A DNA stretch of 64,000 nt, from IMG/VR virus record IMGVR_UViG_3300042891_000711, positions 1 to 64,000 of that record. One strand, given 5' to 3'. Positions 20,562-21,681 of this stretch are shown here, piece by piece (position 1 is the stretch's first letter; every line of letters begins with the position of its first letter). A program made the position numbers and the translations under genes. Under the pieces are notes generated by a model. It saw only the letters and a list, made by a program, of their open reading frames with translations, did not search any database and was not told the DNA's origin.

Positions 20562-20633
20562 ATGTGGACTAAACCAGCAGCTACTGAAATGCGTTTCGGT
20601 TTTGAAGTAACTATGTATGTAATGAACAAGTAA
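20562..20633 (+). CDS. pqqA: PQQ precursor peptide PqqA (not in ORF track)
   Basis: [23 protein letters not shown] with E-x-x-x-Y core; AGGAG SD; own terminator. Confidence 0.95.
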   Translation: [23 protein letters not shown]

Positions 20634-20655
20634 TTTATTGTTCCGTACTGCAATA

Positions 20656-20679
20656 ACAAAAGCCCTTCGGGGCTTTTGT
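20656..20679 (+). terminator. intrinsic terminator after pqqA
   Basis: ACAAAAGCCC-TTCG-GGGCTTTTGT. Confidence 0.85.
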
Positions 20680-20693
20680 CACGAATACGGGTT

Positions 20694-20759
20694 ATAAATT
20701 TTTTTAATGATAGGTATAAGAAAATTTAATTAGACAAGTGAAGTTAATAAGTGTAGTAT
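20694..20759 (+). promoter_or_regulatory. OxyR-type site abutting the sigma70 promoter of ahpC
   Basis: ATAA-N7-TAAT-N7-ATAA-N7-TAAT (20694-20730), then TAGACA-17-TAGTAT. Confidence 0.65.
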
Positions 20760-20783
20760 ATAATTTTAATCAAGGAGAAATAA

Positions 20784-21350
20784 ATGAGTTTAATCGGAAA
20801 ACAAGTAGAAGAATTTAAAGCACAAGCATACCAACAGGGTAAGTTTGTAGAAGTATCAGAGCAAGACTTAAAAGGTAAATGGAGTGTGTTATTCTTTTAT
20901 CCAGCAGACTTTACATTTGTCTGCCCAACAGAATTAGCAGACCTACAAGACGTATACGCAAGTGACTTCAAAGGCTTAGGCGTTGAAGTATACAGTGTAA
21001 GCACAGACACACACTTTGTACACAAAGCATGGGCAGATGCTACAGACACAATCCGTAACATCACCTACACAATGATTGGTGATGCTAACCATCAGTTGGC
21101 TCGTCAATTTGGTGTGCTAATTGAAAGCGAAGGCTTAGCCGACCGCGGTACGTTTGTTATTGATCCAGATGGTGTAGTACAGATCATTGAGATCAATCCA
21201 GGTGGTGTAGGTCGCGATGCTAAAGAGTTGCTACGTAAAGTTAAAGCAGCAAAATACACACGTGAACATCCAGGTGAAGTATGCCCGGCTAAATGGCAAG
21301 AAGGAAGTGCTACACTAGCACCAAGTTTGGATTTAGTAGGTAAACTATAA
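20784..21350 (+). CDS. ahpC: alkyl hydroperoxide reductase C (2-Cys peroxiredoxin)
   Basis: [13 protein letters not shown] and GEVCPAKW. Confidence 0.97.
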
Positions 21351-21353
21351 AAC

Positions 21354-21380
21354 AAAAAGCCCCAATTAAGGGGCTTTTTT
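21354..21380. terminator. bidirectional terminator
   Basis: AAAAAGCCCC-AATTAA-GGGGCTTTTTT between convergent genes. Confidence 0.85.
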
Positions 21381-21381
21381 A

Positions 21382-21681
21382 TTACTGCGTCAACACCCAT
21401 TTAACGAGCGTTTTAATATCCTCGTCTTTGATCTGTGGACTCATTGGCGGCATTGGAATAGGACCCCATACTCCACTACCACCTTTCTTAACTTTGGCTA
21501 TAAGTTTAGCCTCTGCGTCAGCTTGACCTTTATATTTGGCAGCAACATCTCGATACGCCGGACCTAATATTTTTTTATCAACTGCGTGGCAAGCTAAACA
21601 GCCACTTTTCTGTGCCAATGCCTGATTAGCATTTGCTGTGATACAACTACCTAATAATAATACTGCTAAAATAGTTTTCAT
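21382..21681 (-). CDS. cytochrome c551/c552 (class I c8, cytochrome cH-like)
   Basis: signal peptide, CLACH heme motif, GPAY, GGSGVWGPIPMPP with axial Met. Confidence 0.93.
   Translation of the reverse strand: MKTILAVLLLGSCITANANQALAQKSGCLACHAVDKKILGPAYRDVAAKYKGQADAEAKLIAKVKKGGSGVWGPIPMPPMSPQIKDEDIKTLVKWVLTQ

Follow-up and report, generated by a model that had tools for sequence, protein, structure and literature searches.

The closest described systems are the T4-like Methylophilaceae viruses VP_266 and VP_139 from Lake Baikal, in which Coutinho et al. 2020 (PMC7678222) reported PqqA, the precursor peptide of pyrroloquinoline quinone (PQQ), together with a methanol dehydrogenase, and for which they proposed a methanol-oxidation booster. 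Here we describe a comparable locus in IMG/VR virus record IMGVR_UViG_3300042891_000711. The analyzed window comprises 64,000 nucleotides, being the first 64 kb of a 218,902-bp record with a CheckV completeness of about 62%, and around positions 20562-21681 it carries pqqA, the peroxiredoxin gene ahpC and a gene for a c551-type cytochrome. Like the Baikal viruses, it belongs to a freshwater phage that is T4-like, has about 35-38% GC, is predicted to infect Methylophilaceae and carries a pqqA gene; unlike these viruses, which encode a methanol dehydrogenase, none was found here in 219 kb. The central idea, phage pqqA as an auxiliary gene for methanol oxidation, is not new (PMC7678222). What appear to be additions are the breadth of pqqA among Methylophilaceae phages, its invisibility in the annotations of cultured phages, a shared upstream box and the accompanying c551 and AhpC: the Baikal paper makes no mention of a cytochrome, a peroxiredoxin, an upstream box or pqqA in cultured Methylophilales phages.

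A second comparison concerns the orphan pqqA cassettes of the bacteria themselves. Methylophilaceae genomes hold 3 to 12 copies of pqqA against one pqqBCDE (Beck et al. 2014, PMC4109929), and in a PQQ producer of the Methylophilaceae type it is the orphan copies that are highly expressed when PQQ synthesis peaks (PMC9851590). Evidently the dosage of the precursor gene matters to these bacteria, given that they keep so many orphans beside a single pqqBCDE and express them strongly at that peak. We counted 3, 5 and 7 copies in three Methylophilaceae genomes, which bears out the remark in a first-pass annotation of the window that methylotrophs often carry extra copies; in each of the same genomes we found one PqqE, at least one and up to several methanol dehydrogenases, and ahpC paired with ahpF (of PqqB to PqqE, the search there covered PqqE only). 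In the 1.27-Mb Ca. Methylopumilus genome all three pqqA copies are monocistronic orphans with their own terminators. Judging by its layout, the phage gene has the same form as this host cassette: an identical 23-residue peptide, a monocistronic unit of Shine-Dalgarno site, open reading frame (ORF) and terminator uncoupled from pqqBCDE, and an upstream box of the ATGA-TTT-TCAT type. It differs from the host cassettes in its location in a lytic phage genome, in the degenerate second half of the box and in a 5' leader that is specific to the phage lineage.

Cyanophages carry petE plastocyanin, petF ferredoxin and psbA, i.e. a soluble electron carrier and a rapidly turned-over component, and leave the rest to the host. 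By analogy, the locus described here may follow the same logic, applied to methylotrophy and respiration and with a cofactor precursor peptide as one of the items.

Results

The first-pass annotation had pointed to an uncalled 23-residue pqqA with a Shine-Dalgarno site and its own terminator, and to a c8-type cytochrome about 750 bp away. Both genes are real (the measured distance is 748 nt), but the ahpC gene that fills the gap between them was overlooked. The region 20300-21900 consists of three short, separate transcription units, one each for pqqA, ahpC and the cytochrome. The first of these contains the following features:

20562-20633 (stop included), plus strand: pqqA, 23-residue PQQ precursor peptide, matched by PF08042 and TIGR02107
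20550-20554, plus strand: Shine-Dalgarno sequence AGGAG, 7 nt before the pqqA ATG, read from the sequence
20656-20679, plus strand: intrinsic terminator hairpin of pqqA, with a 10-bp stem, a UUCG loop and a U tract lying partly inside the stem

The identity of pqqA is confirmed by two profile models: the peptide scores 42.4 bits against PF08042 (cut-off 21.1, E 6e-11) and 40.4 bits against the NCBIfam equivalog model TIGR02107 (cut-off 20). The peptide also contains, as E15-V-T-M-Y19, the Glu-X3-Tyr pair that PqqE cross-links during PQQ synthesis. The terminator folds with -21.5 kcal/mol (z = -4.1, none of 200 shuffles being as stable); a simple terminator scan does not list it because the T run overlaps the stem. 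All phage pqqA copies that we inspected have a comparable Shine-Dalgarno site, and the terminator is likewise retained in them. A convincing sigma-70 promoter was not found for pqqA (the scan count equals the expectation from shuffles), the 5' leader folds no more stably than shuffles (z = -0.04), and an Rfam search returned a sub-threshold, terminator-like match only.

For wider searches the 23-residue query was replaced by degenerate DNA patterns, and both resulting scans provide lower bounds (at least 120 each). The pattern for an 11-residue core of PqqA occurs at no fewer than 120 places in bacterial contigs (one genome per species). Among the matches listed, nearly all belong to Methylotenera, Methylophilus, Methylobacillus, Methylovorus, Ca. 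Methylopumilus or generically labelled relatives, so that this PqqA subtype seems almost exclusive to Methylophilaceae; 26 of the listed Methylophilaceae copies encode a peptide 100% identical to that of the phage. At the DNA level the best identity with the listed host copies is 94% over 72 nt, without extended identity. The named relatives of the cytochrome are likewise Methylotenera and Methylophilaceae. A Methylophilaceae host, as had been supposed from the letters of the window, is therefore well supported by the PqqA subtype, by the identical host peptides and by the isolates described below that carry the ORF. From its GC content and habitat, the host is most likely a pelagic, low-GC member of the family such as Ca. 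Methylopumilus.

A tblastn search of 50,697 GenBank phage records recovered the ORF in Venkman, P19250A, MEP301, MEP401/402 and four Melnitz genomes, all isolated on Methylophilales or Methylophilaceae hosts, and also in an uncultured podovirus of freshwater-spring origin. Records of 'Acinetobacter phage MD-2021a', whose assembly is doubtful, gave two partial and weaker matches (E 0.01, 78% coverage). We do not claim that all cultured Methylophilales phages carry pqqA: MEP431-434, HIM624-A, phiMB624-A, MG-MTP1 and RSA-MFP1 gave no match or may lie outside the searched collection. In IMG/VR the pattern GFEVTMY is found on at least 120 contigs, and all 120 that were listed hold intact PqqA ORFs in which Glu-X3-Tyr is kept. 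Based on the similarity of flanking genes these divide into about 45 siphoviruses resembling Venkman and P19250A, 13 contigs of the spring podovirus type, about 13 jumbo phages, 4 Melnitz-like phages and 45 unplaced contigs. The search of phage genomes for pqqA that had been proposed with the initial idea thus yields the gene in cultured and uncultured phages alike.

Gene callers missed the pqqA ORF on every contig inspected. In GenBank it is wholly unannotated for Venkman, P19250A, MEP301 and MEP401/402, and pqq was not found mentioned as a phage gene in the accessible papers on phage isolates. In Melnitz MZ577095 (74848-74943) and in MW202481 (2067-2195) a 'hypothetical protein' coding sequence on the opposite strand overlies the true pqqA ORF.

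The phage copies are under strong purifying selection. For 109 distinct phage pqqA sequences we obtained pS 0.57 and pN 0.09, corresponding to dS of about 1.1 and a dN/dS ratio of 0.09 (0.07 for host copies). The very peptide of the window is encoded by 20 distinct DNA versions.

None of the partner genes was found alongside. PqqB, C, D and E were not found across the record, which extends to all 218,902 bp what the first-pass annotation had noted for the window, and no phage ORF reaches E 0.001 against PqqE or PqqD. Nor was AhpF or a cytochrome c peroxidase found in these 219 kb.

A conserved sequence precedes pqqA:

20447-20470, plus strand: conserved box CTTTAATGATTTTACGTATGTT, at about 110 nt from pqqA on its upstream side; putative target of a host regulator

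Related jumbo contigs differ hardly at all in the 115 nt that precede the pqqA ATG and start with CTTTAATGATTTTACGTATGTT, including those whose peptide and flanks have diverged. We scanned for boxes of the type TAATGA[TA]T[TA][TC] at -180 to -50 of pqqA, with the expectation taken from the background rate. The box precedes 39 of the 125 phage copies (0.57 expected, about 70-fold), among which those of P19250A and Melnitz, and 12 of the 115 host copies (0.45 expected, about 27-fold). The host consensus is the palindrome CTAATGATTTTCATTAG, against TTTAATGATTTTACGTATG in phages; the second half of the phage box is degenerate, with TACGTATG where the host has TCATTAG. It lies some 100-110 nt upstream of pqqA in the window (20447-20561), in contigs L271, L281, L291, L294, L016 and L015, and in G001 near 416024 and 1186145. 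In Ca. Methylopumilus the best match of the whole genome lies about 110 nt upstream of one pqqA, and a second pqqA is likewise preceded by a match, at about 100 nt. Within the 219 kb of the phage record, a relaxed form of the box is no commoner than chance and the pqqA instance is the only intergenic one; the box is therefore not a general phage promoter. We consider it a putative site of a host regulator that travels with the cassette, and since it also occurs in the host, the cassette is probably read by the host's own pqqA regulator. A published description of a box upstream of pqqA was not found.

The two neighbouring units share a terminator:

20784-21350, plus strand: ahpC, typical 2-Cys peroxiredoxin (alkyl hydroperoxide reductase subunit C), matched by TIGR03137
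21354-21379, both strands: bidirectional terminator common to the convergent ahpC and cytochrome genes, from a terminator scan and folding
21382-21681, minus strand: class-I cytochrome c, c551/c552 (c8) type, periplasmic and bearing a signal peptide, from PDB and Pfam matches

AhpC scores 319.6 bits against the equivalog model TIGR03137 (cut-off 272) and has both catalytic residues, the peroxidatic Cys47 in FVCPTE and the resolving Cys167 in EVCPAKW. The shared terminator folds on either strand, with -15.2 kcal/mol (z = -3.5) on one and -17.2 kcal/mol (z = -4.6) on the other. The closest relatives of this AhpC (84-98% identical) are located on large phage-like contigs, 147-343 kb in length, with DnaK, Hsp20, CsgF/G and the cyclase in common. 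By these relationships, AhpC is an old resident of the phage lineage.

The cytochrome (99 residues) matches the PDB structures 1dvv, 2exv and 351c at E 3e-29, as well as Pfam PF00034 and PF13442, in agreement with the c8 type that had been assigned to it. Its haem motif CLACH occupies residues 28-32, and IPMPP falls within the part aligned with 1dvv and 2exv. For the mature protein we computed about 80 residues (78-81), 8.6 kDa and pI 9.5. It resembles c551 of Pseudomonas and c552 of Nitrosomonas and Hydrogenobacter (class ID, c8; 351c, 1dvv, 1a56, 1ayg) in its length of about 80 mature residues, the N-terminal CXXCH, the segment GPxxxxVAxKY and the WGxIPMPP motif with the Met ligand, and differs from them in being phage-encoded. 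Homologues are present on 22 IMG/VR contigs and in one PHROG of unknown function, and none was found in the 50,697 GenBank phage records. Identity to the cytochromes of the three Methylophilaceae genomes is 68-74%.

Cytochrome cH of Methylobacterium extorquens has a c2-like fold, and that of Methylophilus is a basic protein of about 8.5 kDa (a literature search on the latter gave nothing usable). Among the best 60 of 76 PDB matches no entry is named cH, and the strong matches are all c551/c552. By size and charge the phage protein fits a soluble, basic, 'cH-like' carrier, and it may function as such. Its host orthologues in Ca. Methylopumilus and Methylobacillus lie in a housekeeping locus (ilvD, unknown gene, cytochrome, amino-acid transporter, hemF). 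In the streamlined Ca. Methylopumilus genome the orthologue is single-copy, which together with this locus fits a general carrier to the oxidase. In Methylophilus rhizosphaerae (C5:247231-249370), a 68%-identical paralogue is found 161 bp downstream of, and on the same strand as, a PQQ dehydrogenase of the methanol/ethanol family. The two may form a dedicated pair, and this proximity links the cytochrome family to PQQ enzymes. Overall, a role of the phage cytochrome in the methanol-oxidation chain seems plausible, at about even odds.

The association of the three genes varies among relatives. In contig L281 pqqA immediately precedes ahpC and encodes a peptide that has diverged but retains E-X3-Y; contigs L271, L291 and L294-296 have pqqA, one inserted ORF, ahpC and then the cytochrome; L292 has pqqA directly after the cytochrome, without ahpC; and L282 has two tandem pqqA copies 7 kb from ahpC. 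Contigs L272-275 retain cytochrome and cyclase without pqqA and ahpC. In their place, equivalent to 20500-21380 of the window, they hold an HNH/NUMOD3 homing endonuclease, which suggests endonuclease-driven turnover of the cassettes. In general pqqA and ahpC tend to come and go together, and the cytochrome stays with the cyclase, which adjoins it in all relatives of the lineage, even those without pqqA and ahpC:

21801-23825: CHASE2 sensor fused to an adenylate/guanylate cyclase domain

Discussion

To our knowledge, the only energy-yielding dehydrogenases of Methylophilaceae need PQQ. We propose, with a probability of roughly two in three, that the window is the left part of a T4-like jumbo phage of about 350 kb from lake water, that this phage infects a Methylophilaceae host, and that its three genes are monocistronic cassettes, independent of each other, within a variable island of genes derived from the host. 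Each cassette would supply a 'consumable' or turnover-limited member of a host pathway and leave the machinery to the host. Phage PqqA would be converted by the host's PqqD/E, PqqB and PqqC plus a protease, one peptide per PQQ; because the peptide is identical to the host's own, recognition of its leader by PqqD/E is predicted. As PQQ is the cofactor of the XoxF/MxaF methanol dehydrogenases that power the cell, an extra and strongly expressed pqqA copy would keep PQQ synthesis going during infection, to the presumed benefit of the phage. AhpC, as the peroxidase subunit, would remove peroxides and be reduced by host AhpF, on which it would depend given that AhpF was not found in the phage record and adjoins ahpC in host genomes. 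For the basic 8.6-kDa cytochrome, the host would provide export and maturation, and the protein would enlarge the pool of soluble periplasmic carriers between the dehydrogenase/cytochrome cL step and the terminal oxidase. The labels of methanol-oxidation booster and of a cH-like cytochrome given in the first-pass annotation are functional inferences; the reading behind them is supported as far as the sequence reaches.

Nonetheless, several observations count against this proposal. A PQQ dehydrogenase of the methanol/ethanol family was not found in the 219-kb record, which covers about 62% of the genome. The three genes are neighbours and not an operon, and relatives keep the cytochrome without pqqA and ahpC or have pqqA elsewhere. 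The closest host orthologues of the cytochrome reside between ilvD and hemF, not in mxa or xox clusters. AhpC points to no particular source, because its cellular relatives are all about 70% identical (some 70-73%, in Methylophilaceae and many unrelated phyla alike). PQQ is a recycled cofactor, so that its limitation within one infection cycle is not obvious. Finally, pqqA is covered at very high depth by contigs of two lake metatranscriptomes, but immediately beyond the ORF their sequence departs from that of the phage, which places them at other pqqA loci and not at that of this phage. Cyclase fragments of related phages are present in one of the RNA runs.

Alternatively, the locus might be a module for oxidative stress and redox homeostasis, in which AhpC acts on cytoplasmic peroxide, c551 passes electrons to a periplasmic cytochrome c peroxidase or to some other general respiratory acceptor, and pqqA increases PQQ for purposes other than methanol dehydrogenase. 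The location of ahpC between the other two genes, the joint gain and loss of pqqA and ahpC in several relatives and the housekeeping context of the host cytochrome orthologue would all fit; moreover, c551 is the classical donor to the di-haem cytochrome c peroxidase in Pseudomonas. However, the CCP_MauG family was not found in the phage, nor in Ca. Methylopumilus universalis and Methylobacillus flagellatus (two of the three hosts), the known PQQ enzymes of these obligate methylotrophs are methanol dehydrogenases, and the gene of one cytochrome paralogue is directly linked with that of a PQQ dehydrogenase. We consider this explanation unlikely, though deserving of some weight.

Radical SAM proteins are unusually many in the phage: there are at least seven (23829-24986, 29921-31186 and 39433-40749 in the window; 164659-169977 of the record), none at PqqE significance. 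Given that PqqA is a peptide precursor processed by a radical SAM enzyme, and that one of these genes (23829-24986) lies just 2.2 kb downstream of the locus, it might be argued that the PqqA-like peptide is a substrate of the phage's own enzymes and leads to a product other than PQQ. This is hard to credit for a peptide identical to host PqqA in a record where nothing matches PqqE or PqqD at E 0.001. Furthermore, contig L271 keeps pqqA without a radical SAM gene between cyclase and carboxypeptidase, and siphoviruses of about 38 kb carry pqqA too (their radical SAM content was not checked).

Host genomes with many scattered orphan cassettes, and the presence of the ORF in small siphoviruses with recombinases, could also indicate that pqqA is not selected for its product and is a homology patch that serves recombination with, or integration into, host pqqA loci, or else a chance passenger. 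It is the peptide and not the DNA that is conserved, which argues against a recombination patch and against a dead passenger alike: synonymous sites are near saturation and the peptide is almost invariant. The lack of extended DNA identity with the listed host copies, the retention of Shine-Dalgarno site and terminator in inspected copies and the occurrence in T4-like lytic phages as well point in the same direction, and leave this explanation with hardly any credence.

T4-type structural genes are present in the record (a gp6-like baseplate wedge with 1024 bits, hub/tail lysozyme, tail fibres), which is that of a genuine T4-like jumbo phage, and the phage DNA was recovered from lake-water metagenomes. 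Viral genes lie on both sides of the locus in a viral genome, and a host homologue exists, as expected for auxiliary genes:

1889-2788: collagen-like tail fibre, left of the locus
8870-9757: homing endonuclease, left of the locus
28874: endonuclease, right of the locus
48226: tail protein, right of the locus
51075: DNA ligase, right of the locus

Thirteen contigs, assembled independently from many lake samples, encode precisely the same cytochrome protein. These have in common the order porin, UDP-glucose-dehydrogenase-like gene, pqqA, ahpC, cytochrome, CHASE2 cyclase, radical SAM gene and DD-carboxypeptidase, and the uncalled pqqA ORF is present in every one of them that reaches far enough. 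A contig from a second sample (DNA run) bridges 20242-20810 with zero mismatches, i.e. the dehydrogenase-like gene, pqqA and the start of ahpC. The host-derived misassembly that the first-pass annotation had named as a danger to its idea is, like host contamination of the locus, very unlikely because of this recurring gene order and the exact bridging contig. Cellular-type genes abound in the first 28 kb (DnaK, CsgG, porin, cyclase, DD-carboxypeptidase), but host DNA wrongly joined to a phage contig, or a cellular record altogether, is very improbable in view of the bridging contig, the same order in many samples and in relatives of 94-343 kb, the phage genes flanking the locus and the even GC content of the window (0.35-0.43).

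Taken together, a broader picture can be drawn, which we offer tentatively and at somewhat less than an even chance. A pqqA cassette of about 230 bp (operator-like box, promoter region, 23-codon ORF, terminator) would be a widespread and repeatedly acquired signature gene of Methylophilaceae phages, i.e. of siphoviruses, podoviruses, Melnitz-type myoviruses and jumbo T4-likes. It would supply a consumed cofactor-precursor peptide instead of an enzyme and be wired to a host transcription factor by its box, with c551 as a phage-borne respiratory c-type carrier.

Some further features of the record were observed. A short (263-residue) UDP-glucose/GDP-mannose dehydrogenase-like ORF occupies 19568-20427 (a full-length one is located at 32300-33544), and its stop codon overlaps the start of a very hydrophobic 22-residue ORF (20359-20427). 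A metallophosphoesterase and a phosphate-selective porin O/P at 17287-19493 look like a set for phosphate acquisition, to which related contig L272 adds a PstS-like binding protein. At 11077-14987, CsgG (11077-11943) is followed by two proteins with weak Curlin_rpt matches (11968-12759; 13851-14987, the latter also with PA14) and then by a FecR-domain protein. Published descriptions credit Melnitz and the pelagimyophages with the CsgGF pore only, without fibre subunits; here curlin-like subunits are possible. Chaperones are encoded at 4850-7230 and 45365-47002 (full-length DnaK with 844 bits, Hsp20 and GroEL), and in the related contigs L282 and L271 these are joined by ClpS, ribosomal protein S21 and an omega-like gene of RNA polymerase. 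ARAGORN identified a permuted (two-piece) tmRNA with tag peptide ANANTKDVVKVSMGRGFRFGSRTEALAA at 42929-43341 (plus strand); a two-piece tmRNA was also reported in the OM43 myophage Melnitz (PMC9004378). Outside the window, the tail/baseplate region contains a single ORF of 4370 residues (record positions 179296-192408).

Conclusions

The size cut-offs of gene callers have hidden pqqA, even in well-studied isolates. Its subtype provides a simple marker for predicting a Methylophilaceae host of a viral contig, and the shared box points to a regulator of pqqA in these bacteria. Cultured phage-host pairs carrying pqqA already exist, which makes the hypothesis directly testable. In oceans and lakes, Methylophilaceae (OM43, LD28/Ca. 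Methylopumilus) are major methanol consumers. If their phages indeed supplement the PQQ precursor, along with a periplasmic carrier and a peroxidase, infected cells would represent a distinct metabolic state for C1 turnover.

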